64,000 nt of DNA, from positions 186,001 through 250,000 of the IMG/VR virus record IMGVR_UViG_3300023174_000039; one strand, written 5' to 3'. Positions 9,092-29,624 of the stretch are shown here, piece after piece (within the stretch, counting starts at the first letter, position 1; each line of letters opens with the position of its first letter). The notes below the pieces were generated by a model, which ran no database searches, was not told the DNA's origin, and saw only the letters and a list, made by a program, of their open reading frames with translations. The position numbers and the translations under genes were made by a program.

Positions 9092-9092
9092 T

Positions 9093-10178: not shown

Positions 10179-11721
10179 CCTAACCGACAAGCAGAGCGAC
10201 TATGCTGTGTTCCTTCCAGCTATATCTGGCTTCTATGCCACCTTTGTGGGCAAGCAACGCAATGAACCGTATGTAGATCCTGCTAGGTTCCCCCAAGGAT
10301 TTACTGACATGGAACAGATGAATTGGCTTAATAGTCAAAAAGGTATGTTTCCTTACAAGTGGAGTCTGTACTCTGGTGGTCATGCTAACTTGGACTTGAA
10401 CAAACAAGACTGGTCAGAAGACATGGTTCGTAATCGTGATCCTAACACTATTATGCTAGGAGACTCAGGTGGGTTCCAGATTGCCAAAGGCCTGTGGGAA
10501 GGTGACTGGAAAGCCAACTCGGGTTGTCCAAAAGCTCAAAAGAAACGTGAGTCTGTGCTAACTTGGTTGGACACTATCAGCAACTATGGTATGGGCCTAG
10601 ATATTCCAACCTGGGTTATCCACGACAAGAAAGCAAGCGATGCCTGTCAGATCAAAACACTAGACGAAGCAGTTGCGGCTACCAAGTTCAACAATGAATA
10701 CTTTATCCGGCACCGCCGGGGCAAAGATCAAGGTGGCGCCCGTTTCTTAAATGTGCTACAAGGTGACAATCATACGTCTGCTGAGGAATGGTATCAGCAA
10801 ATGAAACACTTCTGCGATCCTGCTGTGTACCCCGATCGTCACTTTGATGGCTGGGGCATGGGCGGACAAAACATGTGCGATGTACACTTGGTGTTAAAAC
10901 GCCTTGTGGCCTTGCGCTACGACAATCTACTACAAGAGGGCAAACATGATTGGATGCACTTCTTGGGAACCTCCAAGTTGGAGTGGGCCGTTTTATTAAC
11001 TGTAATTCAGAGAGCCGTAAGAAAATATGTCAACCCGCAATTCACTATCTCGTTTGACTGCGCCAGTCCGTTCCTTGCAACAGCCAATGGACAAGTGTAT
11101 TTTGAAAATGTCTACGAGCACAACCAGAAGTGGTCGTATCGCATGGCTCCTTCAGCCGATGACAAAAAATACGCCACAGACACCCGCAAGTGGAGCGACG
11201 GAGTAGTAGCAGACGGCATCTACGATAACTGGGAAGATTCGCCATTAAGCAACCTGTTCAAGATGAAAGACATCTGTATCTACAAACCTGGTGACCTAAA
11301 CAAGATTGGCAAAGAAGGCAAAACATCCTGGGACTCATTCTCGTATGCTTTGCTGATGGGACATAATGTTTGGATGCACTTGACTGCGGTACAAGAAGCC
11401 AATAGACGGTTTGATGCAGGTTCTCGTCCTGCCATGATGCAACGGCAAGGCGGTGACTATGCCAAGTTTGAGGACATTGTGGAGGCCATCTTTGCCGCAC
11501 CAGATCGTGTGACTGCCGAAGCCATAATTGAACAGTATGACACCTATTGGATGGAAATTGTGGGCACCCGTGGATTCAAAGGCAAAAAAGCCAAGAATGC
11601 TCGAACCCAGTTCAAAGCATTGTTTAGTTTTGAAGAACCCGAAGTTGACACTGAATCTATAGATAGTGTACAATTAGATACAAACGCATTGAATCAACTT
11701 GAACAGGATCAAGAGAAATGA
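10165..11721 (+). CDS. dpdA: DpdA/TGT-family guanine transglycosylase, probably the phage DpdA2 type that inserts 7-deazaguanine into DNA
   Basis: GDSGGFQ, LDIP, NVLQG, HFLGTS and ISFDCASP motifs; co-located with folE, queD and queE. Confidence 0.82.
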   Translation: MIQDNLTDKQSDYAVFLPAISGFYATFVGKQRNEPYVDPARFPQGFTDMEQMNWLNSQKGMFPYKWSLYSGGHANLDLNKQDWSEDMVRNRDPNTIMLGDSGGFQIAKGLWEGDWKANSGCPKAQKKRESVLTWLDTISNYGMGLDIPTWVIHDKKASDACQIKTLDEAVAATKFNNEYFIRHRRGKDQGGARFLNVLQGDNHTSAEEWYQQMKHFCDPAVYPDRHFDGWGMGGQNMCDVHLVLKRLVALRYDNLLQEGKHDWMHFLGTSKLEWAVLLTVIQRAVRKYVNPQFTISFDCASPFLATANGQVYFENVYEHNQKWSYRMAPSADDKKYATDTRKWSDGVVADGIYDNWEDSPLSNLFKMKDICIYKPGDLNKIGKEGKTSWDSFSYALLMGHNVWMHLTAVQEANRRFDAGSRPAMMQRQGGDYAKFEDIVEAIFAAPDRVTAEAIIEQYDTYWMEIVGTRGFKGKKAKNARTQFKALFSFEEPEVDTESIDSVQLDTNALNQLEQDQEK

Positions 11722-12251
11722 ATAGAGAAGGTCACGAAAACATCGACCTGTTTATTGGTCAAGAAGTGGAACATACACCAGCATATGGACAAAAAACATT
11801 GTTTGTTGTAGGGTTACAAGATGTTGCTAAGATTCTAGAAATTCTCAAGAATCACAAATCCTATCTTGATCCAGAACGACACATAACCCATGTGTACTTT
11901 GGTGCTAACATGAGCTTTCCGCATCTCTTGGTCAATGACTACAGATGGCAAGACTGGGAAAACATGATCAAACAAGTATTGGATGCTGGCTATGTATGTA
12001 CCCTTGATATCGATATTGCATGCGTAGAAGGTCTTGCAGAAAGTTCATTGTGTGAACACAACAACTTTATCCCAATGATTTCGGCCAAGATTCCTTATAT
12101 TCGTCTACTCAACTACAATGCAACATTGAAGATTGATGACAAAGACTTTGACGCCACCAATCCAGGCGTGTGGTGTCATAGCATACATACACTACAAAAA
12201 CGAGCAGTGTTCACTGACTGGTCTAAGTATACCAAAGACACCAGTATCTAA
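11718..12251 (+). CDS. Conserved hypothetical protein coupled to dpdA
   Basis: ATGA overlap with dpdA; FIGQEVEHTPAYGQKTLFVVG and HVYFGAN. Confidence 0.75.
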   Translation: MNREGHENIDLFIGQEVEHTPAYGQKTLFVVGLQDVAKILEILKNHKSYLDPERHITHVYFGANMSFPHLLVNDYRWQDWENMIKQVLDAGYVCTLDIDIACVEGLAESSLCEHNNFIPMISAKIPYIRLLNYNATLKIDDKDFDATNPGVWCHSIHTLQKRAVFTDWSKYTKDTSI

Positions 12252-12946
12252 TGTCAAAACTTGAAAACGACCACAATAATCAGAACTCAAAATATCATCA
12301 ACACATTACAAAATCGTTTTTTCATGTGTGTACTGATAAATCAGTGCTGGAAATTGGTCCTAACATAGGACAACAAACCTATTGTATCATGAACAACAAT
12401 CCAAGATTTGTAACACAGGTCGAAGCCGATGAAGATAATTTGCCTAACTTAAGGTCTAGATTTCCACATAATAACATACTACATCAAGATATTTTTGATT
12501 ACTACAAAGTTCCGCACAAAATGGATGTTGTTGTATGTTGCGGAATGTTTTATCATTTGCACAATCCGTTTCATCTGTTAGAGCTAATTGTAAATCAGTC
12601 AGATCCTGAATATTTGGTGTTGGATTGTACCAGCGCAGATAATGCAAGTGGATGGCTCAAGGACTCAATATCACTTGAAGATCCAACAACTGGAGAATGC
12701 AAAATACGTGTTAGAGACGAATATACATCTGCTGTATTAATTGACACTGAAGTTACAAACACTCCTGGAATGAGACAGTCGTCAATGAAAAAACACATGC
12801 CATTTAGCATTGTGTTTCATACTGATTTGTATCGAAAGGCACTTGAATCATTTGGATATCAAACTCTGAAGATTGAGAAAATAGGAACTAGATTCAAGAC
12901 AAAAACCAAGCATAGTAGTTGGATGGGCCTATGGAAGAAAACATAA
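12251..12946 (+). CDS. Class I SAM-dependent methyltransferase
   Basis: VLEIGPNIG; DVVVCCGMFYH. Confidence 0.82.
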   Translation: MSKLENDHNNQNSKYHQHITKSFFHVCTDKSVLEIGPNIGQQTYCIMNNNPRFVTQVEADEDNLPNLRSRFPHNNILHQDIFDYYKVPHKMDVVVCCGMFYHLHNPFHLLELIVNQSDPEYLVLDCTSADNASGWLKDSISLEDPTTGECKIRVRDEYTSAVLIDTEVTNTPGMRQSSMKKHMPFSIVFHTDLYRKALESFGYQTLKIEKIGTRFKTKTKHSSWMGLWKKT

Positions 12947-14094
12947 ATCAAGACAAGTCAAAAACTGCCAACAACAAAAACTTTTGTCCAGCACCCTGGG
13001 TCAGTGTGTATCTTGCGCCAGATGGGACTATCGATAACTGTTGTGTTTCTAGAAACAATCTTGGCAACATTAAACATTCACAAGACACACACAAAATCTT
13101 GTCCGGCAATATCAATCTTGGTGTTCAGCAGGCCATGCTTGACAATCAAGTTGTGCCCGGGTGTGCCTGGTGTCACGGAACTGTGGATAACTTACAAGAT
13201 AGTTTGATAAGAGATCATGGTGATCTAGGCGATTCATTTTATCAACCCGGATTCTTTAATTTAAAATATCTAGATGCAAGATGGAGCAACACCTGTAATT
13301 TGGCGTGTGTATACTGCAACGAAGGATGCAGCTCGTTGTGGGCACAAGAAAACAACAGACACATTCCCATAAAAACCAATGACAGAAATAATTTTTTACA
13401 GTATGTGCTGGACAATGTGGAATCCCTAGAACGCATTCAAATGGCAGGTGGCGAACCGTTGTTGTTGAAAGAAAACGAGTTGTTGATCAACGAAATAATT
13501 TCTCGTAATCCCAAGTGTCACATAACCATCAACACAAATTTAATAAACATTGACAACAAAATTTATCAACAATTGATACGCCTAGACAATGTAAGATGGC
13601 TGGTGAGCTTTGAAGCCACCGGTGCTCAGTATGAGTACATTAGATACCCTGGAAAGTGGTCTGTGTTTGAAAACAATCTACAACAGCTCAAACTCGATGT
13701 TGAAAACACCCAAAGTACCATTAGCTTTAACATGGTATTTCTTTCGTTAAATGCCATGTCATACTGGGACACAATTGACTGGACCTTGGATTTTTTTAGT
13801 GACACCCAAAAATCAGCCACGCTGGCACTGGCATTGTACAACAATGGTGTGTTTCCCGGGGCGTTTGATCCCCGTGCGTTATCTGCCAACTATAGAAATC
13901 AGATAATCAATCGCATGCAAAAAGGCAATTACAGTGGACTCAGAGGCTATCAAAATATTGCCAAATCTCTTGCAAGTAACGAGCATATTAGTGTAAAATT
14001 CAATGACACAATGCAAGGACTTGACAGTCGCAGAGGTCTAAATAGTAGACAACTTTTTCCTGAAATTTATAACTCTATAGAAAACACTTTATGA
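12919..14094 (+). CDS. Radical SAM protein with an N-terminal twitch-like domain
   Basis: FCPAPWVSVYLAPDG..CC; CNLACVYC; AGGEP. Confidence 0.9.
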   Translation: MDGPMEENINQDKSKTANNKNFCPAPWVSVYLAPDGTIDNCCVSRNNLGNIKHSQDTHKILSGNINLGVQQAMLDNQVVPGCAWCHGTVDNLQDSLIRDHGDLGDSFYQPGFFNLKYLDARWSNTCNLACVYCNEGCSSLWAQENNRHIPIKTNDRNNFLQYVLDNVESLERIQMAGGEPLLLKENELLINEIISRNPKCHITINTNLINIDNKIYQQLIRLDNVRWLVSFEATGAQYEYIRYPGKWSVFENNLQQLKLDVENTQSTISFNMVFLSLNAMSYWDTIDWTLDFFSDTQKSATLALALYNNGVFPGAFDPRALSANYRNQIINRMQKGNYSGLRGYQNIAKSLASNEHISVKFNDTMQGLDSRRGLNSRQLFPEIYNSIENTL

Positions 14095-14534
14095 ATCAAG
14101 AGCAACGAGAAAAAATTGAAAGATGCAAACAATATGCAGATAGAAAAATCTGGGTTACCTTCCGCAAAGAAGGAATCCACAAGTACCCTGCTGCCGCTAG
14201 TGATCCTGCACTGGCGACTGGTGATGAATATGATGTTAGTTTCCTTGGTGTGCCTCATAGACACATATTTCATTTCCGAGTTTGGATTGATGTTTTTCAC
14301 AACGATCGCGATATTGAATTTATCCAGTTCAAACGCTGGTTGGAAAAGCTCTATGCCGGTGGAACACTGGAACTCAACTTCAAGAGTTGTGAAATGATCT
14401 CAGATGATCTGTACCTGCAGATTGCTCAAAGGTATCCTGACCGTGCGGTCTGGATTGAAGTGGCCGAAGATGGTGAGAACGGCGCTTTGATCAAATATGA
14501 AATTTCTCGCCCAAGTTTATCAATTGTAAATTAA
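14091..14534 (+). CDS. dpdL: T-fold QueD paralogue, DpdL-like (candidate CDG decarboxylase)
   Basis: LGVPHRHIF matches the LxxxHRHxF motif I recall for DpdL. Also has SCEMISDD and EVAEDGENG T-fold features and sits in the deazaguanine cluster. Confidence 0.62.
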   Translation: MNQEQREKIERCKQYADRKIWVTFRKEGIHKYPAAASDPALATGDEYDVSFLGVPHRHIFHFRVWIDVFHNDRDIEFIQFKRWLEKLYAGGTLELNFKSCEMISDDLYLQIAQRYPDRAVWIEVAEDGENGALIKYEISRPSLSIVN

Positions 14535-14544
14535 AAGGAAAAGT

Positions 14545-14772
14545 ATGGCCAAGCCTACAATCAAATCCAACCCTCGTGTGACTGAGATCTACGAGGATCT
14601 CGAAAAGTACTTGGAGTTCTGCCAAGACTACGGGTATCGCTACAACGAAGCGGACTTGTATAACTTCAAGAGTTATGCATTCCAGCAGTTCAACAAGTGG
14701 GCACAGGGCAAGAATGCCAAGAATATGTGGTGGGAAGATGCAAGACGTTTTGCAGGATATCGTCCCGCATGA
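14545..14772 (+). CDS. Small conserved phage hypothetical protein
   Basis: AAGGAAAAG SD; 75 aa. Confidence 0.75.
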   Translation: MAKPTIKSNPRVTEIYEDLEKYLEFCQDYGYRYNEADLYNFKSYAFQQFNKWAQGKNAKNMWWEDARRFAGYRPA

Positions 14773-15662
14773 TTCACGTATTCTTTGATTGCGGATCTTT
14801 TGGTAGTACCATAGAATCGGTGTTGCACAACTACACTGATCACAGTGTGCCAATTGATTCCAAGATCTTAGATGACGGATCCATGCATTCGTTTCTCAAA
14901 GAACAACATGTGACAAGTGTCAAGATACTGGATGATTTTCTTCATCAGGGTACATCTAACAGTAATACTATTACTACGCCAACGTATCCGTTTAAGGAAT
15001 TTAAACTACCTACAATTCTTGAGCATTTTTCTTTGAGCCAATCCTGGGCTACTGATACAAAAATTTTGATATTTCAACCGGACCTTAGAGCATGTGAACT
15101 AAACTTGTTGTTCAAGTATCACAAGGTCTGCATCAGTTACATAAATGCTGGTCTTGATATTATCATTGGTGATAATCAACACAATATTGTGAATTGGAAT
15201 CAAACCTATACTCACTGGTCGCAGATGAAAACCTGGGAACTGAGAGAGTGGTTGAGTTTGTTTTACACAGGGTTTGTGCAGGAGTTTATTGATGCCAAAG
15301 ACCAAGTAACAGATGATTGGTTAAAACTCACCAACACTGACATATTGTACAATACCAAAGAGTCATTGCTCAAAATTATAAATCACTGTGGGTTGACCAA
15401 CACCAAAGACCTTACAGATTTTGTGACCAAGTGGCAACAGGCACAAAAATACATTGTGGACGAGTTTAATCTGTTGGATCAAATTGTTGATTGTGCCATT
15501 GCTAACCAGCCACTAAAATGGCAACCTATCAACATCATAGCAGAAGCTATTGTTCAACAACGGCTGAGAGCAAAAGGTTATGAGATTCGATGCGACGGCC
15601 TTGACATATTCCCAACAGATGCTATAATGTTTAATACACTACTAGAGAAAGTACACCAATGA
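14769..15662 (+). CDS. Hypothetical protein, possibly sulfotransferase/P-loop-like
   Basis: Likely start MIHVFFDCGSFGSTI at 14769 (ATGA overlap). Confidence 0.65.
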   Translation: MIHVFFDCGSFGSTIESVLHNYTDHSVPIDSKILDDGSMHSFLKEQHVTSVKILDDFLHQGTSNSNTITTPTYPFKEFKLPTILEHFSLSQSWATDTKILIFQPDLRACELNLLFKYHKVCISYINAGLDIIIGDNQHNIVNWNQTYTHWSQMKTWELREWLSLFYTGFVQEFIDAKDQVTDDWLKLTNTDILYNTKESLLKIINHCGLTNTKDLTDFVTKWQQAQKYIVDEFNLLDQIVDCAIANQPLKWQPINIIAEAIVQQRLRAKGYEIRCDGLDIFPTDAIMFNTLLEKVHQ

Positions 15663-16861
15663 GAAAACTATTTTACATGGGCTTGGAAAGTTACGAAGCC
15701 CGATATACACTACAATTAACAGAGTGGAACCGACGAGTGTTTGACCGTAGAGGTCTTGACGTTGTGTATGTTCCCGGAACCACTATTGACAATAGCCAGG
15801 CTATTTCGGTAGGTCAAGTGCTGGACGCACATGGACGCAGTTATTTTAGCATGAGCCAGATGATGAACTTGGTTCAGATGATGAAGAACGGAGAAGTTAC
15901 CAATGAAGATGTTATCTACTTTGAAGACATGTTTCAACCCGGTATTGAGAGTTTACCCTACATCCTTAATCAGGTTCCTGCTGATCAACGTCCTCGTGTG
16001 TATGTGCGCTGTCTTGCTCAGTCCATTGATCCTGATGACTTCGTGCATGTATGGGGTATGGCGAAATGGATGGGCCTCTACGAACAAATGGTTAATGAGT
16101 TCGTGGACGGGGTTCTCGCCACAAACGAAGAGATGGTTGCTCATATGCGCATTGCTGGATGGCGTGCTCCTATATACAATATTAGTGGCCTAGCATTCGG
16201 CAAGGCGGAAGTGTTAGAGCGCATTGGTGGCGCAGAGAATATCCGGCCATTTGATCAGCGTCCACGACGTGTGGGATTTGCCGCACGGTTTGACCAAGAG
16301 AAGCAACCAGGATTCTTTATGGACTTGATTGACATGTATGGGTACTTGACCAATCAGCCTTGCGAGTTTGCTATCTTCTCAGGTGGCCCGTTGCGCAGTA
16401 ACAATCCAGAATACATTAGTCGTGCTAGACAAATGGAACGAGAAGGCAAGCTCAAGATCTACGAAAACCTCAGCAAGAACGATTACTATGAGTTATTGAA
16501 CGATACTAGAGTGCTGTTCAACTGTGCCCTGCAAGATTGGGTAAGTAATACAGTATCCGAAGCAGATACATTAGGAGCAAATGTGGTATATCCTGCATAT
16601 CGCAGTTTCCCAGAGACATTTGCAAACGATCCTGAACGCTTGTATGTTCCTTGGTCAATTGATGATGCCTATCACAAAATGCAAAACATGTTGCACAAGC
16701 CACATCATAACATGGGCCTGATCAGTGACTGGAACAATGGTACCATCGACCGCGTGATTGATATCATGCAGGGCCAAGGCGAGCAATGGAACCGTGCAGG
16801 TAATCGTTATCGTGATCATACTGCTCACGAGAAGTATCAAGTTGTAAAGATTGAAGAATGA
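15659..16861 (+). CDS. GT-B (GT4-like) glycosyltransferase
   Basis: FAARFDQEKQPG, LSKNDYYELL, VSNTVSEADTLG, YPAYRSFPE. Confidence 0.8.
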   Translation: MRKLFYMGLESYEARYTLQLTEWNRRVFDRRGLDVVYVPGTTIDNSQAISVGQVLDAHGRSYFSMSQMMNLVQMMKNGEVTNEDVIYFEDMFQPGIESLPYILNQVPADQRPRVYVRCLAQSIDPDDFVHVWGMAKWMGLYEQMVNEFVDGVLATNEEMVAHMRIAGWRAPIYNISGLAFGKAEVLERIGGAENIRPFDQRPRRVGFAARFDQEKQPGFFMDLIDMYGYLTNQPCEFAIFSGGPLRSNNPEYISRARQMEREGKLKIYENLSKNDYYELLNDTRVLFNCALQDWVSNTVSEADTLGANVVYPAYRSFPETFANDPERLYVPWSIDDAYHKMQNMLHKPHHNMGLISDWNNGTIDRVIDIMQGQGEQWNRAGNRYRDHTAHEKYQVVKIEE

Positions 16862-17808
16862 GTAAAATTATTGTTACAGGTGCTGCCGGCTACATCGGTG
16901 GACAGATTAGTATAGCATTGCGTGATGCAGGATATCAAGTGATTGGCATTGACCTTATGCCAGCACCATCACACTTGGTAACACAGTTTACCAGATTTCA
17001 TCAAACAGATTTTGCAAGCGATACTGCATTGCAAACTATTCTAGAACATCGCCCGGATGCTATCATACATTGTGCTGGGACCAGTTTGGTTGGTCCAAGT
17101 ATTGACAACCCTCAAGAATACTACAACAACAATGTGGTCAAAACATTGAAGTTGTTGGACATGTTGGTTGATAAACTATCCAGCACTAGATTCATATTCA
17201 GTTCAAGTGCGGCTGTGTACGGTGTTCCGTTTATGACTCCGTGTCACGAGATAGATCCATGTGATCCTATCAGTCCGTATGGCGAAAGCAAGCTGATGAT
17301 TGAGCAAGCAATGGCTAGTTATCATCGAGCATATGGTTTAAACTATGTTGCATTTCGATACTTTAATGCATGCGGTGCTGATAGCAGTCGCCGGCACGGT
17401 CAGGCTCCTGGAGCCACACACATCATTGCTAGAGTACTTGAAAGTATCAAAAATGATCAGGAGTTTACACTCAACGGCATAGACTACCCAACCAAAGATG
17501 GCACATGTATTCGGGATTATATCCATGTAGAAGATATTGCTCGTGCTCATGTATTGGCATTAGATACCAAAGTTCCATCAGGCATTTACAATCTTGGCAG
17601 CAATACTGGTGTCAGCAACAGAGAGATTATCACAGCCGCAGAAGCTGTTACCAGTAGAACTGTTAATGTGGTAACTGGGCCTGCTCGTGCAGGAGATCCT
17701 CCGGTGCTGACTGCTGAACCAGGTAAATTTACCGAAGTAGCTGGAGAATGGAAAAAGTACACACTAGATGACACAATACAACATGCATGGAATTGGTACA
17801 ATGTTTGA
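16858..17808 (+). CDS. galE: UDP-glucose 4-epimerase
   Basis: VTGAAGYIG, SSSAAVYG, YGESK, FRYFNACGA, RDYIHVED. Confidence 0.92.
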   Translation: MSKIIVTGAAGYIGGQISIALRDAGYQVIGIDLMPAPSHLVTQFTRFHQTDFASDTALQTILEHRPDAIIHCAGTSLVGPSIDNPQEYYNNNVVKTLKLLDMLVDKLSSTRFIFSSSAAVYGVPFMTPCHEIDPCDPISPYGESKLMIEQAMASYHRAYGLNYVAFRYFNACGADSSRRHGQAPGATHIIARVLESIKNDQEFTLNGIDYPTKDGTCIRDYIHVEDIARAHVLALDTKVPSGIYNLGSNTGVSNREIITAAEAVTSRTVNVVTGPARAGDPPVLTAEPGKFTEVAGEWKKYTLDDTIQHAWNWYNV

Positions 17809-18397
17809 TAAAATCCTGCAGTTTGAACGAGCTCTAGCAGAGTTTACCGGTGCACCATATGCAATCATGACTGATTGTTGTACACATGCCATTGAACTGT
17901 GTTTGCGATATGATCAAGTTAAGCATTGTAAGATGCAACCTTACACATACCTAAGTATTCCAATGACCATGCACAAGTTGGGCATCAAATATGAATATCT
18001 TGATCACGAATGGCAACGTTGGGTTGGTGAATATCCCATACTTGAAACACGCATTTGGGATAGTGCTCGTAGACTTGAAAAGGATATGTATCGTCCGGGT
18101 ACCTTGACCTGTTTGAGTTTTGGTCGTGGCAAGCCTTTGCATATTGGTCGTGGCGGTGCTATCTTGTTAGATGACGTTGAGGCTTACGATACCATGCTAG
18201 CTCAACGATACGATGGTAGAGACTTGAGTATCACACCTTGGGAATCACAACAGGTGTTTAAAGTGGGGTATCATTACAAGCCCACTATCGAAGAAGCTGT
18301 GCAAGGACTTGCATTGCTAGAAGGTGTCAAGACAAATCGGCCAAAGCCAATCCCAGTAGATTATCCAGATCTACGTAAAATTAAAATTATACCTTGA
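17801..18397 (+). CDS. Short DegT/DnrJ-like PLP aminotransferase-family protein
   Basis: FERALAEFTG...DCCTHAIELCL...CLSFGRGKPL.IGRGGAIL. Confidence 0.75.
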   Translation: MFDKILQFERALAEFTGAPYAIMTDCCTHAIELCLRYDQVKHCKMQPYTYLSIPMTMHKLGIKYEYLDHEWQRWVGEYPILETRIWDSARRLEKDMYRPGTLTCLSFGRGKPLHIGRGGAILLDDVEAYDTMLAQRYDGRDLSITPWESQQVFKVGYHYKPTIEEAVQGLALLEGVKTNRPKPIPVDYPDLRKIKIIP

Positions 18398-18422
18398 CAT
18401 CGCGATCTAAATACGTTACAAT
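18394..18422 (+). promoter_or_regulatory. Sigma70 promoter with nested TAAATA, upstream of folE
   Basis: TTGACA 18394-99, 17 nt spacer, TACAAT 18417-22; TAAATA at 18408-13. Confidence 0.7.
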
Positions 18423-18461
18423 AGCACAAAGACATCCACGTCATTAACTCGGAGAACCAAC

Positions 18462-19274
18462 TTGACAAAAACTTTTATTCCAGATCCTGTTATACATACA
18501 GATTCAAAAAACACATTCGTCCCCCACGCTCATCAGAGCCCAATTGAAAAAGCCAGCAAGAACATGAGTGACAAGGGCTATGAAGAAGGTTACCTAGGCG
18601 ATGCCATTCGTTTCAAGATGAAACGTGACAACAAACGTTTCTGGGCAGGCGACAACATTAGCGACTATATCAATGGGGCAGATAAAGAAACTTTGATTGA
18701 CGAAGCAACAGAAGCATTTGAACTAGTGCTTGATCGTTTGCTTATTGATCGTGAAAATGATCCCAACTCAAAAGGTACAGCAAGACGACTTGCTAAAATG
18801 TACTTCAATGAAATTATGGAAGGTAGATATGAACCAGAACCAGACGCCACAGCATTTCCAAATGATTCGGAGAGCCGTTATGAAGGCATGCTTGTGGTAC
18901 GTAGCGAGTTGCGCAGTATGTGTAGTCATCATCACCAACCTGTGGCTGGCGTGGCTTATATTGGCATTATTGCTGCTCAAACTCTTATTGGACTTAGCAA
19001 ATATACACGCATTGCACAGTGGTGCGCCAGACGAGGTACTCTCCAGGAGGAACTTTGTAATGACATTGCCCGCGAGATTAGTAAAGCTACTGTTTCAGAA
19101 AACGTAGCAGTGTACATTCAAGCCACACACGGATGCTGTGAGAATCGTGGCATTATGGCACATAGCTCGTTGACTCAGACTACTGTGTTGCAAGGTGCGT
19201 TCAAAACAGATCCGTCAGTGAAGAAAGAGTTCTTTGACAACATTAAACTACAACAGGAGTTTGCCCCAAGATGA
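18462..19274 (+). CDS. folE: GTP cyclohydrolase I
   Basis: SMCSHHHQP, GLSKYTRIAQWCARR..LQE, ATHGCCENRG; TTG start after GGAG. Confidence 0.95.
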   Translation: MTKTFIPDPVIHTDSKNTFVPHAHQSPIEKASKNMSDKGYEEGYLGDAIRFKMKRDNKRFWAGDNISDYINGADKETLIDEATEAFELVLDRLLIDRENDPNSKGTARRLAKMYFNEIMEGRYEPEPDATAFPNDSESRYEGMLVVRSELRSMCSHHHQPVAGVAYIGIIAAQTLIGLSKYTRIAQWCARRGTLQEELCNDIAREISKATVSENVAVYIQATHGCCENRGIMAHSSLTQTTVLQGAFKTDPSVKKEFFDNIKLQQEFAPR

Positions 19275-19672
19275 GATATGAAACCCTAGAAGAAGCCGCT
19301 GCCGCAGGTGCCGCACCTTGGAGTGACGAAGCTACAGAATATTCAGATTATCATGTGGCAGTGTTCCGTGATGCTTATCCAGTAACTGTTGGACATTTAC
19401 TATTTGTTCCACGATGGAACAAGAATGACATCATTGAACAAGCAATGAACTATGCTTTCCGTTTTGGTCACCGAAAAGTAGTAACTGGTGAATGGGAGGC
19501 CTACAATGTGGGTATCAATTGTGGCGAGGCTGCAGGACAAACTGTGATGTATCCTCATGTGCATTTGATTCCACGCAAGGTGGGCGACTGCGCCAATCCC
19601 ATTGGTGGTGTTCGAGGTGTGATACACGGACAGGCCAACTATAAAGCTACTGGCTATACCAAACCAGTATAA
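19271..19672 (+). CDS. HIT-family hydrolase
   Basis: GQTVMYPHVHLIPR. Confidence 0.92.
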   Translation: MRYETLEEAAAAGAAPWSDEATEYSDYHVAVFRDAYPVTVGHLLFVPRWNKNDIIEQAMNYAFRFGHRKVVTGEWEAYNVGINCGEAAGQTVMYPHVHLIPRKVGDCANPIGGVRGVIHGQANYKATGYTKPV

Positions 19673-19683
19673 GTAATGATCTC

Positions 19684-19749
19684 AGCGGCCTTTAGAGCAT
19701 TCATCCCGCTATACAAATTCTGCAAGCCTATGCTATAATCTAACATAGG
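19684..19749 (+). promoter_or_regulatory. Candidate preQ1-I-like riboswitch or leader upstream of queD
   Basis: AGCGG/CCGCT stem, CATCCC and A-rich tail, possible loop-tail pseudoknot, then a CCTATG/CATAGG hairpin over the SD. Confidence 0.4.
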
Positions 19750-19758
19750 AGAATAATA

Positions 19759-20313
19759 ATGGCACAATCATCGACTCAGGATCTAATTAGACATATGGAG
19801 CAAAATCTTCCATATCGTGGGCCTGTTCAATACAAGTTCACCAGTACCAAAGAGTACATTGACGCATTTCCTTGTGCATACCGACAGTGGAGAGCCGACA
19901 GTCATTGTAACTTGAATCATGGGTACTCGTTTAGTATGAAGTTTTACTTTGGTACTAACGACCTTGATGTTCGAAACTGGGCTGCCGACTATGGTGGACT
20001 CAAGGAACTTAAAAAGATCCTAGAAGATCAATTTGATCACACTACTTTGGTCAGTGCCGACGATCCAGAACTGGAATTTTACAAAGAGATGGAACGTCGC
20101 AAACTGGCCAAGCTCACAATCTTGCCCCGTGTAGGATGTGAATCACTTGCAGACATGCTGTACAAGTATGTTAATGGTGTTTATATACCAGACTTTTGGG
20201 GTCCAGGTGAAGCAGAGCGTTTGTGGTGCTACCGAGTGGAAGTACGTGAAACACAAGCAAACATGGCTTTCCGTGAAGGCCATAGAGAATGGAATGAGGA
20301 CTTATTTGCATGA
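19759..20313 (+). CDS. queD: 6-carboxy-5,6,7,8-tetrahydropterin synthase
   Basis: CAYRQWRADSHCNLNHGY, FDHTTL, GCESLA, EVRET. Confidence 0.88.
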   Translation: MAQSSTQDLIRHMEQNLPYRGPVQYKFTSTKEYIDAFPCAYRQWRADSHCNLNHGYSFSMKFYFGTNDLDVRNWAADYGGLKELKKILEDQFDHTTLVSADDPELEFYKEMERRKLAKLTILPRVGCESLADMLYKYVNGVYIPDFWGPGEAERLWCYRVEVRETQANMAFREGHREWNEDLFA

Positions 20314-21164
20314 ACACCCCCGAATTTGATATTGCAATTTTATTGCCCACTCGTGGGCGATCTGATTCACTAGAACGTAGTGTAAAAAGTGTAATTGAAT
20401 TAGCATCAGCGCCAGACAAAATTCAACTGATGTTTGGATTTGATGACGATGACGAAATTGGCACCAAGCACTTTGAAGATGAACTACAGCCGTGGCTAGA
20501 TGCACAAGGTGTGCATTATACTGCCATGAGCTTTGCTCCTTTAGGATATATTCGTCTCAACGAATATGTCAACGAACTAGCACGTAACAGTGATGCACGT
20601 TGGTTGGTATTTTGGAATGACGACGCTGTGATGGAAACCCAGGACTGGGACAAAGAAATCATGAAGCACGAAGGCGAGTTTAAGTTACTTGCATTCCATA
20701 CACATCATGATCATCCTTACAGTATCTTTCCTATTGCACCTCGCAAGTGGTTGGAGTTGTTGGGTTATTTGAGCCCACATCAGATCTCTGATGCATGGCT
20801 GAGTCAACAGGCATACATGCTGGATATCTGGGAACGGATTGAAGTTGATGTGTTGCACGATCGTCATGATCTTACCGGCAACAACAACGATGAAACATTC
20901 CAGAATCGCCCCATGCTGGAAGGCAATCCCAAAGATCCTAGAGATTTCCATAGCATTCAACAAATGGAACTTCGTCATGTTGACTGCGCCAAAATTGCAA
21001 CTTACTTGCAAAACGAATGCGGCAAAGACATGAGTTTCTTTGCCAACATCTTCAGAGGCACCCAAGATCCTTGGGAAAAACTAGCCAAGAACGATGTCAA
21101 CAAGCAAATGATGCAGTTTGCTAACCCACACAGTAATAAACAAAATGTCACAATCAAGTCTTGA
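20310..21164 (+). CDS. GT-A (GT2-like) glycosyltransferase
   Basis: ILLPTRGR; FWNDD (DXD-like). Confidence 0.82.
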   Translation: MNTPEFDIAILLPTRGRSDSLERSVKSVIELASAPDKIQLMFGFDDDDEIGTKHFEDELQPWLDAQGVHYTAMSFAPLGYIRLNEYVNELARNSDARWLVFWNDDAVMETQDWDKEIMKHEGEFKLLAFHTHHDHPYSIFPIAPRKWLELLGYLSPHQISDAWLSQQAYMLDIWERIEVDVLHDRHDLTGNNNDETFQNRPMLEGNPKDPRDFHSIQQMELRHVDCAKIATYLQNECGKDMSFFANIFRGTQDPWEKLAKNDVNKQMMQFANPHSNKQNVTIKS

Positions 21165-21933
21165 AGATCGTATTAAAAAATACTGGAACACACAGCCGTG
21201 CAACATCAAACACGGCACTAGCGATATTGGTACTGCTGAATTCTTTCAGGAAGTAAGCGAACGCCGATACAAAGTAGAATCTCACATTGCTGAGTTTGCA
21301 GGATTTCACTTGTGGGCCGGTAAACGTGTGCTAGAAATTGGTTGCGGTATTGGATCAGATGCTGAAGAATTTGCCAAGCATGGTGCCGAGTATGTGGGCA
21401 TTGACTTGAGTGACCAAAGCATTGCACTAAGTCGTCAACGATTTGAAACACTGGGACTCGAAGGCGAGTTTTACAATATTGATGCAACAGATGCCACGGC
21501 TCTTGCTACACTGGGCGAGTTTGATCTTGTGTATAGTTATGGTGTAATACATCATTTTCCTGGCATTGACAAGATTATTGACAATGTACACGAAGTGGTC
21601 AAGCATGGTGGAGAATTCCGATTCATGGTGTATGCCAAGAACTCCTGGAAGTATGCCATGATACAAAAAGGGCTTGATCAATTTGAGGCACAAGCAGGTT
21701 GCCCATACGCACAGGCATTCAGTAAAGATGAGATTCATCAGATGATGAACAGCGACAATGGATGGTATGTTGAACGTTTGCGTCAAGATCACTGCTTTAT
21801 GTACAATGTAGATGAGTACAAGAAAGGCAATTATGTGTTAGAGCCATGGTTTGAAGCCATGAGCGATGCACATCGTCAAGCGGTACGAGAATATCTAGGC
21901 TGGCATTTGTTGGTTAAGGCTCGCAAAGTTTGA
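21145..21933 (+). CDS. Class I SAM-dependent methyltransferase
   Basis: VLEIGCGIGSD; FDLVYSYGVIHH. Confidence 0.9.
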   Translation: MSQSSLEDRIKKYWNTQPCNIKHGTSDIGTAEFFQEVSERRYKVESHIAEFAGFHLWAGKRVLEIGCGIGSDAEEFAKHGAEYVGIDLSDQSIALSRQRFETLGLEGEFYNIDATDATALATLGEFDLVYSYGVIHHFPGIDKIIDNVHEVVKHGGEFRFMVYAKNSWKYAMIQKGLDQFEAQAGCPYAQAFSKDEIHQMMNSDNGWYVERLRQDHCFMYNVDEYKKGNYVLEPWFEAMSDAHRQAVREYLGWHLLVKARKV

Positions 21934-22661
21934 GTAGACTGTTTGCTTTTGGATGTAGTTTTACCCATTATAGATGGAGTACCTGGGCTGACATCCTAGC
22001 AGTGCAGTACGATGAGTACCAGAATTGGGGACAAAGTGGCGGAGGCAATCATTTTATCTTTAATTCTGTTATGGAAGCAGATCAGCGTCACAAGTTTACT
22101 GCAGGAGATACTGTGGTAATTTGTTGGACCAATGTCATGCGAGAAGATCGATACACACACAATTGGCAAACACACGGGAACATTACCACTTGTCAATACT
22201 ATGATGATGCCTATGTGCGTAAATATGTTAGCGAACGTGGTAACCTAGTCCGAGACATGGCATTTATCAAGGCCACACAATTATTTTTACAAAACATTCC
22301 TGACCTAAAGCATGAATTTTTGAGCATGTGTCCATTGGTATACCCAGATCAATACAATCCAAACAGAGTCAGCGACAACCCAGATATTACAGCCTTGTAT
22401 GAATCCGTTCTAAATAACATCAAACCCAGTTACTACGAAACTGTGTTAGCCGAAGATAGATCAAATGGATGGAAGTTGCATAACTGGAACACAGGATTAA
22501 AAGATCCGCATCCTACACCCGTAGAGCACTTGGCGTATTTGGATTGGGTTTTGCCGGGTTGGGTGACAAACTCAGATATTCGTGTTAAAGTAGTACAAGA
22601 AACTGCAGACCCCGACATCATACACAAATTTTTAAAACGACCAGAGATTACGAGATTATAA
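21930..22661 (+). CDS. SGNH/GDSL-like protein
   Basis: FAFGCSFT, NWGQSGGGN, DPHPT. Confidence 0.65.
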   Translation: MSRLFAFGCSFTHYRWSTWADILAVQYDEYQNWGQSGGGNHFIFNSVMEADQRHKFTAGDTVVICWTNVMREDRYTHNWQTHGNITTCQYYDDAYVRKYVSERGNLVRDMAFIKATQLFLQNIPDLKHEFLSMCPLVYPDQYNPNRVSDNPDITALYESVLNNIKPSYYETVLAEDRSNGWKLHNWNTGLKDPHPTPVEHLAYLDWVLPGWVTNSDIRVKVVQETADPDIIHKFLKRPEITRL

Positions 22662-22662
22662 T

Positions 22663-23517
22663 ATGAAACTCAAAGTATCAGAACTATTTTATTCAGCACA
22701 AGGAGAAGGACGCTTTATTGGTGTACCAAGTGTATTCTTGAGAACATTTGGTTGTAACTTTACCTGCGCAGGATTTGGATGCAAGCCTGGCGAAAAGTCC
22801 ACAGAAGCAGACGAGGTTGCCAAGACTGTACACTTGTACAAAACATTTGAAGAGCTTCCGCTTGTAAACACAGGGTGTGACAGCTATGCGTCATGGCACC
22901 CTGACTTTAAAGAACTCAGTCCCACATACGAGATTGATGAGCTAGTAGACAAAATGCTAGACTTGATTCCAGATCGCAAGTGGACCAATCGCACAGGCAA
23001 TGATACACATCTTGTGATCACAGGAGGTGAGCCTTTGCTAGGTTGGCAACGTGTATATCAAGACTTGTTTGATCATGCTGACATGCGTGGTATTAAAAAT
23101 GTTACATTTGAAACCAATGGCACTCAGCAGTTACAACCTAAATTTGGCGCATATCTTAACGAGTGGTTGGCCGGGCACAATGAACTTACATTCAGTGTAA
23201 GTCCCAAACTCAGCGCCAGTGGTGAAGCATGGGAAGAGGCTATCAAGCCGGAGATTGTTGCAACGTATCAAAACTACGGCACAGTGTATCTTAAATTTGT
23301 GATTGATAGCGAAGCACACTTTGAAGAAGTGGATCGTGCAGTAACAGCGTATCGTGCGGCAGGATTTGAAGGTGTAGTATATGTGATGCCGCAAGGTGGT
23401 GTTGTTGCACCATATGCAGAGAATCGTGTGAACGTTGCAGACTGGGCACTTGCACGTGGTTATTATTATACTCCAAGATTGCACGTTGATCTCTGGGGCA
23501 ATGGATGGGGCAAGTGA
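22663..23517 (+). CDS. queE: 7-carboxy-7-deazaguanine synthase (radical SAM)
   Basis: ELFYSAQGEG..GVPSVFLRTFGCNFTC; ITGGEP; FETNG; VSPK; PRLHV. Confidence 0.9.
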   Translation: MKLKVSELFYSAQGEGRFIGVPSVFLRTFGCNFTCAGFGCKPGEKSTEADEVAKTVHLYKTFEELPLVNTGCDSYASWHPDFKELSPTYEIDELVDKMLDLIPDRKWTNRTGNDTHLVITGGEPLLGWQRVYQDLFDHADMRGIKNVTFETNGTQQLQPKFGAYLNEWLAGHNELTFSVSPKLSASGEAWEEAIKPEIVATYQNYGTVYLKFVIDSEAHFEEVDRAVTAYRAAGFEGVVYVMPQGGVVAPYAENRVNVADWALARGYYYTPRLHVDLWGNGWGK

Positions 23518-23912
23518 TGGGAATATTTGATAGATTTTTAAAACCCAAGAAGGCAGAGAAACCAGTAGAGGTCAAAGCACCTCCTGTTCCCAAAGTCAAA
23601 GCACCCGAGAAGACTGCTAAACAATTGGCTACAGAAGCCGGTGAGCCTTATGTGGCTGTATTAGGCATGGATGTAGACCTTGATAACTTACACCAAGGTG
23701 CATTTGAACTTGACTGGAACGAAATCTTTGTTGCTAGACTAATCAAAGCAGGGTATCAAGGCAAAGTAGATGCAGACATTGTGGACCAGTGGTTCCAAAA
23801 CGTGTGTAGACATGTTGTTATGGAAACATGGGAACAAGAACAAGCAATCAAAAACTCAGGCATCTGGGTACAAAGCAAAGACATAGGTAATGGTAGGAGC
23901 GAAGTATCATGA
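23505..23912 (+). CDS. Conserved phage hypothetical protein
   Basis: GEPYVAVL...FELDWNEIF..L...GY...IVDQWF. Confidence 0.75.
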   Translation: MGQVMGIFDRFLKPKKAEKPVEVKAPPVPKVKAPEKTAKQLATEAGEPYVAVLGMDVDLDNLHQGAFELDWNEIFVARLIKAGYQGKVDADIVDQWFQNVCRHVVMETWEQEQAIKNSGIWVQSKDIGNGRSEVS

Positions 23913-24385
23913 TTTTTAATCATATCAAAGAACTAAAAGCACAAGGTAAAAAGATTGGCATTACCTTTAGCACATTTGACATGTTGCATGCTGGCCATGT
24001 TGCCATGTTGTCAGAAGCCAAGAATCACTGTGATTATTTAATTGCAGGATTACAAACTGATCCAACTATTGATAGGCCTGATACAAAAAATCATCCTATA
24101 CAAAGCATTGTAGAACGTCAGATTCAACTTGCGGCTTGTCGTTACGTTGATGAAGTAGTAGTATATCAAACTGAACAAGACTTGATTGACTTGTTGTTGA
24201 TTCTACCATTGGACGTTCGAATTCTAGGTACCGAGTATGAGGACATGAACTTTACCGGTCGTAATGAAGGGGCCGGTCGCGGTATACAGGTTATATTTAA
24301 TAGACGTGACCATAGTTTTAGTTCCAGCAGTTTGCGCAAGCGAGTTGCAGAAGCAGAAAAAATCAAAGCACTCAAACAAGAATGA
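23909..24385 (+). CDS. Cytidylyltransferase (TagD-like)
   Basis: FSTFDMLHAGH (HXGH motif); SFSSSSLR. Confidence 0.9.
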   Translation: MIFNHIKELKAQGKKIGITFSTFDMLHAGHVAMLSEAKNHCDYLIAGLQTDPTIDRPDTKNHPIQSIVERQIQLAACRYVDEVVVYQTEQDLIDLLLILPLDVRILGTEYEDMNFTGRNEGAGRGIQVIFNRRDHSFSSSSLRKRVAEAEKIKALKQE

Positions 24386-25110
24386 TTTTGTATGTCAACG
24401 GCGATAGTCATGCTGCCGCAGCCGAGGCAGTAAATCCACACGCATGGGCCATGGATGATGGGTTGTTTTATGCCCTTGCACGACAGCCACATCCTGACAA
24501 TGAACGTGCCAGCTTTGGATGTGAGCTAGCCAACTGGTTAAATGCTATATTATACTTGGATGCACAAGCCGGTTGTTCAAACACACGCATCATGCGCACC
24601 ACAAGAGAATGGATCAAAGCCAATCCTGATGCAGTAAAAGATTGTTTTATGGTTATTCAATGGACCACTTGGGAACGAGAAGAGTGGTGGCATAACGGCG
24701 AAGACCTTCAAGTAAATGCCAGCGGTATTGATGAAGTGCCCCAAGAACTGCAACAGCGTTACAAACAGTTTATCATTGATGTGGACTGGGACAAGTGCAG
24801 ACAACGTGCTCACGATGAAATTTGGGAGTTCCACAAGGAACTGGAAGCACAAGAAATTCGGCATGTGATGTTTAACGGCAACAACCATTTTGATGGTATT
24901 TCAGACCAAAAAGCGTGGGGATCTAGTTACATGCATCCGTATGCTGCCGAACTGACTTACAATTCGGTACTAAGAAGCAACGGATTCAAAACGGTTAATC
25001 CAGATAGTTGGCATTTTGGGCCAGATGCCCATTGCTATTGGGCGGAATATGTGTTACAATACATTAAACGCAACCAACTATTAACCCCCAATGAAATACC
25101 TACTTATTGA
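24382..25110 (+). CDS. SGNH/GDSL-like protein
   Basis: YVNGDSH, AGCSN, WHFGPDAH. Confidence 0.65.
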   Translation: MILYVNGDSHAAAAEAVNPHAWAMDDGLFYALARQPHPDNERASFGCELANWLNAILYLDAQAGCSNTRIMRTTREWIKANPDAVKDCFMVIQWTTWEREEWWHNGEDLQVNASGIDEVPQELQQRYKQFIIDVDWDKCRQRAHDEIWEFHKELEAQEIRHVMFNGNNHFDGISDQKAWGSSYMHPYAAELTYNSVLRSNGFKTVNPDSWHFGPDAHCYWAEYVLQYIKRNQLLTPNEIPTY

Positions 25111-26110
25111 CACAGCCAACATGTTTTTCCGAGCACGTCACGGTGCCCACAGAGCCAGTGACACATGGACCAAACTAGGCTTTGCATTACACGTTACAAT
25201 GATGGCTGCCAACAAGGTAGCCCGGCGTTTTCAAGCAGATCACGTGATTTTCGCACTGGAAGGTCGATCATGGCGCAAAGACTACTACGAGCCCTACAAA
25301 AAGAACCGTGCTGTAGCACGTGGTAAAATGACCGAGGACGAAGCAGAAGAAGACAAGCTGTTTTGGGAAACTTATGACAATCTGACTAAATACTTGTCAG
25401 ACAGAACCAATTGCAGTGTTATTCGTTGCGCAACAGCCGAAGCAGATGACATCATTGCACGTTGGATTTCATTACACCCCCAAGACGATCACGTAATTGT
25501 TAGCTCAGACACAGACTTTGTTCAATTAGTCGCATCTAACGTCACACAATACAATGGCATTACAGATGAACTGATCACACTGGAGGGCATATTTGATGCC
25601 AAGGGTAAGCCTGTTACAGATAAAAAAACTAAACAACCAAAAACCATCCCGGATCCGTCCTGGCTATTATTTGAGAAGTGCATGCGTGGCGACACCTCCG
25701 ACAATGTCTTCTCTGCTTATCCGGGAGTACGTGAAAAAGGGACAAAGAATAAAGTTGGTCTCCGTGAAGCCTTTGCCGACAGAGACCGAAAAGGATATTC
25801 TTGGAACAACATGATGCTTCAACGCTGGACTGACCATAATGGCGAGGAGCACAGAGTGTTAGACGATTATGAACGTAACTGTACATTGATCGATCTTAAC
25901 GCACAACCGGATGCGGTCAAGGCCACAGTAGATGCCGCAATCCGTGAACAACTTAGTCACAAGGATGTAGGACAAGTGGGCAGTCACTTTCTCAAGTTCT
26001 GTGGCAAATACGAGTTGACCAAATGCAGTGACTCAGCAGAGTCATTTGGTCGCTGGCTCAATGAAACATACAAAGGAGTATTAAATGATACAAGCCAAAC
26101 CAGTAGTTGA
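25091..26110 (+). CDS. rnh: RNase H / 5'-3' exonuclease (T4 Rnh-like)
   Basis: LLIDTAN, EADDII, SSDTDF, RGDTSDNV. Confidence 0.9.
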   Translation: MKYLLIDTANMFFRARHGAHRASDTWTKLGFALHVTMMAANKVARRFQADHVIFALEGRSWRKDYYEPYKKNRAVARGKMTEDEAEEDKLFWETYDNLTKYLSDRTNCSVIRCATAEADDIIARWISLHPQDDHVIVSSDTDFVQLVASNVTQYNGITDELITLEGIFDAKGKPVTDKKTKQPKTIPDPSWLLFEKCMRGDTSDNVFSAYPGVREKGTKNKVGLREAFADRDRKGYSWNNMMLQRWTDHNGEEHRVLDDYERNCTLIDLNAQPDAVKATVDAAIREQLSHKDVGQVGSHFLKFCGKYELTKCSDSAESFGRWLNETYKGVLNDTSQTSS

Positions 26111-28054: not shown

Positions 28055-28083
28055 TTGACCAGAAATGCCCGATTTGCTATAAT
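28055..28083 (+). promoter_or_regulatory. Strong sigma70 early promoter with extended -10
   Basis: TTGACC-17-TATAAT preceded by TG; ATG lies 5 nt downstream. Confidence 0.85.
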
Positions 28084-28088
28084 ACACT

Positions 28089-28427
28089 ATGAACTTAAAA
28101 AAGCAATCACGTAAAAAGCGCACCGACCGTACACACATCATTTATATGTTGCAAAGCGGTGCTGACTTCTACATTGGTGTTACTGCCAAGACTGAATCTA
28201 CTGTTAACAAGAGTGCTCAAGTGCGTTTCAACAAGCACGTATATCGCTCACGTTCAGAAGACAAATCCTGGGCACTATATGAGTGCATGCGTGAGCGTGG
28301 TGTTGACACATTTAACTTGGTGGTTGTGGATGTTGTGCGTGGCAAAACTGAAGCTCACAAATTAGAGCGTGAGATGATCCGTGAACACAAACCTAATTTG
28401 AACACAGATGTGCGTGGTGTTGTTTAA
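28089..28427 (+). CDS. GIY-YIG nuclease-family protein, apparently leaderless
   Basis: IIYML...FYIGVT...RFNKH...LEREMIREHKPNLN. Confidence 0.8.
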   Translation: MNLKKQSRKKRTDRTHIIYMLQSGADFYIGVTAKTESTVNKSAQVRFNKHVYRSRSEDKSWALYECMRERGVDTFNLVVVDVVRGKTEAHKLEREMIREHKPNLNTDVRGVV

Positions 28428-28441
28428 TTACAACACTGCGT

Positions 28442-28502
28442 TTTGGTTGACCAATAATTGCCCATTTGCTATAATATGAACATAGTAAGAAATAAGGAGC
28501 CC
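28442..28502 (+). repeat. 61-bp promoter plus RBS cassette, copy 1
   Basis: Identical to 28726-28786; TTGACC-17-TATAAT...TAAGGAG. Confidence 0.92.
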
Positions 28503-28505
28503 AAA

Positions 28506-28724
28506 ATGAAAGTCACTTTTACCCCTGCAAACGGTCGCCCAATGTTGATCCCTGCAGTGGCACTGAAAACATATCAGGCCAAGCACACGGCGGTTGCGTT
28601 TCTGCAAGCCAATGGTAGCATCCATGCTTCGCCCTTGACTCCTGGTGTTAACAAAGCCCGTAATACTATTCTCCGGGCCAATCGCAAGATCGAGCGCGAA
28701 GGCTGGTACTCCCAGGCTATTTGA
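28506..28724 (+). CDS. Small early hypothetical protein
   Basis: TAAGGAG SD and ATG 28506; 72 aa. Confidence 0.75.
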   Translation: MKVTFTPANGRPMLIPAVALKTYQAKHTAVAFLQANGSIHASPLTPGVNKARNTILRANRKIEREGWYSQAI

Positions 28725-28725
28725 A

Positions 28726-28786
28726 TTTGGTTGACCAATAATTGCCCATTTGCTATAATATGAACATAGTAAGAAATAAGGAGCCC
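28726..28786 (+). repeat. 61-bp promoter plus RBS cassette, copy 2
   Basis: Identical to 28442-28502. Confidence 0.92.
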
Positions 28787-28789
28787 GAA

Positions 28790-29167
28790 ATGACTACAGA
28801 ATTTACAAGTTGGGAAGACATGACAGAATTAGAGCAAGCCCAATGCACATTTTGGGACATGTACAAGGATGCCTACGGTGTTCGCCCACGTGGCGTTGAC
28901 ACATCTGGTTGGACTCTTGATGACTTTACATCTGAGTTTGTGATCCTAGGTCAAGCCATTGACCGTGAAGAGACTGCTCGCAAAGAATCCGAGACCAAGG
29001 CTGTTGAGATGTTTGAACGCCGTGTTGCTGAATTGCTCAGCACAGGTGCTAAAGACCAGGCCATGGCCATGCGTTGGATCCACGAAGCTGAAGAGACCAA
29101 TGGTGACAATGATTACCTTGCTTGGACACTGGGCTTGCCTTATCAGTACTTCCGCAAAGCGGCTTAA
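28790..29167 (+). CDS. Early conserved phage hypothetical protein
   Basis: SD and ATG 28790; WDMYKDAYGVRPRG. Confidence 0.82.
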   Translation: MTTEFTSWEDMTELEQAQCTFWDMYKDAYGVRPRGVDTSGWTLDDFTSEFVILGQAIDREETARKESETKAVEMFERRVAELLSTGAKDQAMAMRWIHEAEETNGDNDYLAWTLGLPYQYFRKAA

Positions 29168-29176
29168 GGAGCAACA

Positions 29177-29599: not shown

Positions 29600-29624
29600 C
29601 CAAAAAGAGACGATTTGCTATAAT
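29596..29624 (+). promoter_or_regulatory. Sigma70 early promoter
   Basis: TTGACC-17-TATAAT with TG extension. Confidence 0.82.

Follow-up and report, generated by a model that had tools for sequence, protein, structure and literature searches.

The preQ1-I riboswitch (Rfam RF00522), the smallest known riboswitch, is a small H-type pseudoknot in which the loop of a ~5-bp P1 hairpin pairs with the 3' tail. According to a 2024 review of the family (PMC11625349), its defining features include a conserved G-C pair that closes P1 and forms the floor of the pocket; a strictly conserved specificity C just before the P1 3' strand, preceded by U in type I and by A in types II and III; UU atop the P1 5' strand in types I and III; an A-rich L3 whose last A reads the ligand, plus a conserved C in type I; and Shine-Dalgarno (SD) bases buried in P2, which gives OFF control. 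The type I representatives, such as the one from Carnobacterium antarcticum, have a 5-bp P1 and a P2 of 3-4 steps, are found in front of queuosine or 7-deazaguanine pathway genes, and act at the level of translation. The RNAs of types II and III (Bacillus subtilis, T. tengcongensis, Escherichia coli) are 33-36 nt long, with A-minor-type contacts of L3 with P1, and type III buries the whole SD in P2. All known preQ1 classes are OFF switches. The opposite logic is seen in translational ON riboswitches such as the Vibrio vulnificus add adenine riboswitch, in which the 3' strand of an aptamer helix alternates between the aptamer and a helix that hides the SD/AUG, so that ligand binding frees the ribosome site; that RNA has a three-way-junction purine fold and controls a salvage gene. 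With respect to gene content, the closest described systems are phage isolates that have FolE, a QueD of the CxxxHGY subfamily, QueE, a DpdL-like T-fold protein (LxxxHRHxF), and a DpdA but no QueC.

The locus described here is found in a window of 64,000 nucleotides (positions 186,001 to 250,000) of the 331,654-bp IMG/VR virus record IMGVR_UViG_3300023174_000039, rated 95% complete by CheckV. An 86-nt gap between a HIT-family gene and a QueD/PTPS-family gene contains a short, strongly conserved RNA element that is best interpreted as a candidate riboswitch; it resembles preQ1-I in layout but is not recognized by the model of that family and is predicted to turn the gene on. The gene for GTP cyclohydrolase I (folE, 18462-19274) lies upstream, whereas a GT2-like gene, a methyltransferase gene, and a QueE-like radical SAM gene (22663-23517) lie downstream. 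In window coordinates, the features of the locus are as follows.

18394-18422, plus strand: sigma-70-type promoter-like site (TTGACA-N17-TACAAT, 11 of 12 matches) ahead of folE, the likely source of a folE-HIT-queD transcript that would carry the element.
19271-19672, plus strand: HIT-family gene; its TAA stop codon (19670-19672) lies 11 nt before P1.
19684-19688, plus strand: P1 5' strand (AGCGG).
19689-19696, plus strand: L1; a variable first base is followed by an invariant C and U, and the rest varies in length.
19697-19703, plus strand: P2 5' strand (GCAUUCA); U19701 is the 5' side of an invariant U.C mismatch.
19704-19705, plus strand: L2 (UC); C19705 is the invariant unpaired C next to the closing G-C pair of P1 and the candidate specificity base.
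19706-19710, plus strand: P1 3' strand (CCGCU).
19711-19720, plus strand: L3, the A-rich tail AUACAAAUUC (consensus WUAYAAAYUC; variants UAAAUAYUC and UAAAAAAUUC are also seen).
19721-19727, plus strand: P2 3' strand (UGCAAGC); C19723 is the 3' side of the U.C mismatch, and C19727 is shared with P3.
19727-19749, plus strand: P3 hairpin CCUAUG/CAUAGG with an 11-nt loop, which pairs the AGG of the SD and is the centroid structure of the leader.
19731-19739, plus strand: TGCTATAAT, an extended -10 identical to the promoter consensus of the phage itself, with a weak -35 (TATACA, 19710-19715, 18-nt spacer).
19747-19751, plus strand: SD sequence AGGAG, 7 nt before the ATG.
19759-20313, plus strand: queD (phage QueD subfamily with a CxxxHGY motif), the gene presumed to be regulated.

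A first-pass annotation of this region, made from the sequence alone, had proposed a preQ1-I-like riboswitch in front of queD. The observation itself is confirmed: AGCGG (19684-19688) and CCGCT (19706-19710), CATC (19702-19705) followed by CCG, the tail ATACAAATTCTG (19711-19722), the hairpin CCTATG (19727-19732)/CATAGG (19744-19749) covering the AGG of the SD, and TGCTATAAT (19731-19739) are all present as listed, and the queD ATG is at 19759. One detail was not upheld. The suggested pseudoknot between TAGAG (19693-19697) and TTCTG (19718-19722) can form in the window, but TAGAG is absent from most relatives, and the conserved, covarying helix is a different one (see below). The interpretation was only partly supported: the preQ1-I-like layout is confirmed, the suggested variant ligand such as CDG or 7-deazaguanine fits the gene set, and the caveat that TGCTATAAT could be a promoter is justified, whereas membership in preQ1-I, the proposed pairing, and feedback repression are not supported.

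Searches against known RNA families, which had been named in advance as a check on the preQ1-I assignment, returned no match to the element. Rfam 15 at gathering thresholds recognized only 21 tRNAs in the window, encoded in two clusters at 30868-39110, and a search of positions 19600-19850 with permissive filters and E≤10 gave nothing. The RF00522 model (gathering threshold, 39 bits) run against the whole genome listed four matches of 17 bits or less, none of them at the element; the best one (25605-25638, 17.1 bits) lies inside the open reading frame (ORF) 25091-26110 and is a chance match. Eight diverse related loci gave no match to RF00522 either. No preQ1-I riboswitch was found in the two metagenome-assembled genomes (MAGs) that hold the element or in 121 genomes sampled from that phylum. 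Full-text literature searches for a queD-associated RNA motif, a fourth preQ1 class, or phage preQ1 riboswitches of this kind returned nothing relevant.

Nevertheless, the element is real and under strong selection. The QueD protein retrieved 593 related stretches in IMG/VR, of which 80 were kept (77-98% identity); related loci are designated here by L numbers. In BLASTN comparisons, the intergenic 74 nt (19683-19756) were often better conserved than the coding flanks, being 96% identical in L032, where the adjacent coding sequence is 84% identical. The element was found by nhmmer in 67 of the 80 QueD loci. A covariance model (R1) built from relatives scored the window at 64.9 bits and about 65 further loci at 39-68 bits, including about 54 copies at 39-59 bits added by a pattern scan independent of the gene followed by this model, and eleven loci at 39-59 bits, among them two contigs binned into Haliscomenobacter and Chitinophagales MAGs. 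Weak hits to R1 of 21 bits or less (L141, L122, L132, L171, L142, and L118) look like chance matches in unrelated sequence, with no P1/P2 context. The element is present in exactly one copy in each of five large phage genomes (229-383 kb) and in more than 100 metagenomic phage contigs. Of the 134 copies with readable downstream sequence, 132 are followed by a QueD homolog of 37-100% amino acid identity, and the other two are cut off or misparsed. The aptamer stays 78-87% identical even where QueD has fallen to 37-41% identity. Cultured phages with related QueD genes (ACP17, phiST, and vB_Ade_ART) lack the element. A truncated copy, containing only P1 and the loop and identical to the 5' half of the L028 copy, is found at L121:1358-1383, about 600 nt upstream of a complete copy, which looks like a gene insertion at this junction. 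In L204 (MAG contig NZ_JBBAKG010000001.1, positions 278-7807), the gene order is FolE, HIT, unknown, radical SAM, element, QueD, B12-binding radical SAM, GT2, and methyltransferase; this 183-kb contig may be a phage contig binned into a bacterial MAG.

Two interleaved helices covary and form an H-type pseudoknot. P1 (19684-19688/19706-19710) is paired in all 38 distinct sequences of an alignment made without any pairing constraint, with compensatory changes at three of its five pairs, a level that was reached in 0 of 500 shuffles. The compensatory variants are CCGG/CCGG, GAGG/CCUC, and UGCGG/CCGCA, and AGUGG/CCACU and AUCGG/CCGAU have been found in addition. P2 (19697-19703/19721-19727) joins the 3' part of the P1 loop to the sequence after the tail. 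Counted outward from the junction, it consists of two pairs CA/UG (twice CG/CG), an invariant U.C mismatch, and then four or five pairs that take more than 30 different forms (GGCA/UGCC, GGCG/CGCC, GGUG/CACC, GGGC/GCCC, GGACA/UGUCU, GAUG/CGUC, ACAU/AUGU, and others). In an anchor-based count over 69 unique copies, positions 3-6 of P2 were paired in 91% of cases, compared to 55% after shuffling of the partners (0 of 2,000 reached the observed value) and 24-56% in shifted registers. Because the MAFFT alignment placed the length difference of L2 at the 5' end, P2 was also counted on two gap-free subsets, which gave 86% and 91% pairing (69-76% in shuffles and 19-61% in slid registers) and 37 and 31 cells changed on both sides, against 15 and 6.5 expected (0 of 500 shuffles). 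The P2 of the window itself is weaker than in most relatives, as it carries an extra A.A mismatch (19699/19725) in addition to U.C, and the nested fold of the leader is no more stable than that of shuffled sequence (z = 0.5).

This covariation bears on two alternative views of the region. An intrinsic terminator or attenuator that ends the folE-HIT transcript might be suggested by a GC-rich 5-bp stem placed just after a stop codon, but the loop is 13-19 nt (17 nt in the window), there is no U tract (CCGCU is followed by AUACAAA), the terminator scan did not call it, and the P2 covariation would remain unexplained; this reading is contradicted by the sequence and can be considered highly improbable. 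The second view, that the conservation reflects a DNA function, with the region serving as the queD promoter with an operator-like inverted repeat and the RNA structure being incidental, is discussed with the promoter data below.

Several features are shared with preQ1-I. In the 39 sequences found without any pattern constraint, the G-C floor pair and the unpaired C directly 5' of the P1 3' strand are invariant (the triplet CCC is conserved throughout); this C is preceded by U in 61, by C in 6, and by A in 2 of 69 copies, so that most copies have the UC of type I rather than the AC of types II and III. L3 is A-rich and ends in an invariant C, but YU replaces the A next to it, and its positions can be equated with those of the preQ1-I L3 only tentatively; the fold analogy as a whole rests on secondary structure only. 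However, L1 begins with N-C-U instead of UU, its first base being C in 32, U in 29, and A in 8 copies, P2 has 7-8 positions with a fixed U.C mismatch, L2 is only 2-3 nt, the element is about 45 nt long, and the SD lies 20 nt beyond P2. For these reasons, and because it fails the family model, the element is not assigned here to preQ1-I. A divergent but genuine preQ1-I riboswitch that binds preQ1 or preQ0 and represses queD, as suggested in the first-pass annotation, remains conceivable in view of the shared features and the que gene downstream, but it is unlikely given these differences, the predicted direction of control, and the gene content of these phages.

The P2 3' strand is also part of a helix that hides the ribosome site, and this arrangement, in which P2 and the sequestering helix are mutually exclusive, was found in three different designs. 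In group 1, which includes the window, the last two bases of P2 in most copies, and one (C19727) in the window, are the first bases of P3, whose GG belongs to the SD. Without those two G-C pairs, P3 is reduced to four A-U-rich pairs closing an 11-nt loop, and in many copies UGCC(G) of P2 can also pair with the AUGGCA start. In group 2, UGUCGUC, which overlaps P2, pairs with GAUGGCA, and in the UGCGG/AUCGG subgroup, (U)GCCAUUG pairs with CAAUGGC(A). In L087, L152, and L139, a shared C has become U, which is matched by a G-to-A change in P2 and tolerated as U.G in P3. Partition-function modeling gave a mean unpaired probability of the SD of 0.36 when free and 0.72 with the aptamer bases withheld for 79 group 1 leaders, and 0.27 and 0.60, respectively, for 17 others (group 2). 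The consistent prediction is that formation of the pseudoknot exposes the ribosome site, i.e., activation rather than feedback repression. This direction is an inference from nearest-neighbor modeling that includes neither pseudoknot nor ligand energies, and an ON switch on a biosynthetic gene would be unusual if the ligand is the end product.

Several lines of evidence suggest that the element is transcribed. In 11 distinct loci, TAYAAT ends exactly 7 nt before P1, in most of them with a TTGAC-type -35 located 17 nt upstream, and in L075, TGCTATAAT occupies the same position; this places the predicted +1 at the first base of P1, the classical riboswitch arrangement. In the window and in most group 1 loci, the element is intercistronic, with the upstream ORF ending 4-13 nt before P1 (11 nt in the window). 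In 81 of 89 distinct contexts, an ORF of at least 80 codons ends within 80 nt upstream of P1, in 58 of them within 4-13 nt. No plus-strand terminator-like site was found between the promoter-like site ahead of folE and position 19684. The three RNA sequencing runs that were found hold only assembled contigs of relatives; one 555-nt contig from a library recorded as metatranscriptomic spans HIT-element-queD in a relative of about 89% identity, although contigs show no 5' ends and DNA carry-over cannot be excluded. The sequence TAA(A/G)TA, seen 4-11 nt before P1, was considered as a T4-late-like promoter but is not used here as evidence for a transcription start, as in most cases its TAA is the stop codon of the upstream ORF. 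Genome-wide, TAAATA is about 10 times denser in intergenic DNA (window examples at 315, 721, 8329, and 18407) and mostly represents a TAA stop followed by 4-8 nt and an ATG, often with no SD, which suggests many tightly coupled or SD-less gene junctions.

The promoter caveat is justified. The phage has a very uniform early-promoter consensus, TTGACC-N17-TGCTATAAT, with 27 genomic sites (e.g., genome positions 40835, 74975, and 116209, outside the window, and window positions 15620, 28075-29616, and 48721), about 22 of them with a TTGAC -35, often followed by ACTTGTAT and an AAAGGAG SD. This classical -35/-10 type argues against a Bacteroidota host, even though two related contigs are binned into Haliscomenobacter and Chitinophagales MAGs. 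The P3 loop carries exactly this extended -10 (TGnTATAAT), and all group 1 variants keep TAnnnT; the -35 is poor in the window (TATACA at 18 nt) but better (TTTACA at 17 nt) in many relatives, and CCTATG-N11-CATAGG brackets the -10. However, a DNA site does not explain compensatory changes in two interleaved helices. Moreover, group 2 copies and L075 keep the aptamer but have an upstream promoter and no internal -10, whereas group 1 copies have no consensus promoter just upstream of P1 and carry an internal -10. Thus, a purely DNA-based function appears unlikely, and a promoter probably coexists with the RNA element rather than replacing it. Two queD mRNAs can be expected in group 1, a read-through RNA under the control of the pseudoknot and a short RNA starting near 19746 that would lack the anti-SD strand and escape control.

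The gene content of the phage bears on the identity of the putative ligand. Four 95-100% complete genomes, including that of the window, each encode a single PTPS-family protein, and Pfam searches revealed no QueC or TGT/DpdA in any of them; phmmer searches of the genome of the window with DpdA of vB_Ade_ART, gp123 of ACP17, and DpdA4 of phiST found nothing. On this gene content, the element is found only in phages that lack QueC, and the phage itself would make no preQ0 or preQ1. A very distant transglycosylase cannot be excluded, so that either this enzyme is too divergent to detect or the product is not inserted into DNA. The QueD belongs to the phage CxxxHGY subfamily, shared with phages that have complete pathways, and positions 14091-14534 encode a T-fold protein with the LxxxHRHxF motif that is 57% identical to ACP17 gp125 and related to phiST gp040. 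These genes are part of a plus-strand biosynthetic cluster (8369-25110), much larger than in the phage isolates mentioned above, that holds two radical SAM/SPASM genes, two methyltransferases, the DpdL-like gene, a homolog of ACP17 gp124 (15659-16861), an NAD epimerase, a DegT aminotransferase, FolE, HIT, QueD, a GT2 glycosyltransferase, a QueE-like gene, and a cytidylyltransferase-like gene, which suggests a 7-deazaguanine derivative more elaborate than dDG. The presence of FolE, QueD, QueE, and a DpdL-like protein without QueC points to CDG or 7-deazaguanine, not preQ1, in line with the variant ligand suggested earlier. With ON logic, a precursor such as the FolE product dihydroneopterin triphosphate, which shares the 2-amino-4-oxo face, or guanine is at least as plausible as the end product, and the present data do not discriminate between them.

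Taken together, these data are best explained, with moderate confidence, by a ~45-nt H-type pseudoknot (19684-19727) in the intercistronic leader of queD, within a folE-HIT-queD mRNA, that acts as a translational riboswitch. In this view, a small ligand with a guanine-like face would bind at the P1/P2 junction, next to C19705 and the invariant G19688-C19706 pair, and stabilize P2, which would free the SD from P3 (or from the AUG-hiding helices in relatives) and switch queD translation ON. The conservation, the two covarying helices, the exclusive link to queD, the sharing of bases between P2 and the sequestering helices, and the failure of the preQ1-I model are established by the analysis; ligand binding, the identity of the ligand (a 7-deazaguanine or pterin pathway metabolite, or guanine), the effect on expression and its ON direction, and the transcript that carries the element are inferred. 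A structured RNA that works without a metabolite, such as a protein-binding translational operator, a device coupling queD initiation to termination of the upstream ORF, or a constitutive anti-sequestering, stability, or thermosensing element, is less likely but cannot be dismissed: a ribosome terminating 4-13 nt before P1 would touch P1, and the pseudoknot could fold on its own. However, the sixteen invariant and five nearly invariant columns in 46 nt, mostly in unpaired junction positions, and the close parallel of the junction to a known ligand pocket are typical of aptamers, and group 2 copies sit at the predicted 5' end of the mRNA with no upstream ORF. It is possible, though only tentatively proposed, that the element represents a new riboswitch class, so far restricted to uncultured jumbo phages, that reuses the preQ1-I pseudoknot scaffold with a different pocket (N-C-U in L1, a fixed U.C pair in P2, and a YUC end of L3), senses a metabolite other than preQ1 (7-deazaguanine or CDG, a pterin intermediate such as dihydroneopterin triphosphate, or guanine), and activates translation of the gene that commits GTP-derived pterin to 7-deazaguanine synthesis for DNA modification.

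All known preQ1 riboswitches are bacterial OFF switches for queuosine precursor supply. With a length of about 45 nt, more than 60 natural variants, and clear compensatory mutations, the element is amenable to direct study in vitro without culturing the phage. A phage-borne relative with a changed pocket and inverted logic would be the first RNA sensor tied to phage 7-deazaguanine DNA modification, an anti-restriction strategy, and would show how a minimal aptamer scaffold can be retuned to a new ligand and a new output. It would also give a handle on what these uncultured 330-kb phages make with a FolE/QueD/QueE/DpdL cluster that lacks QueC and any recognizable DpdA.
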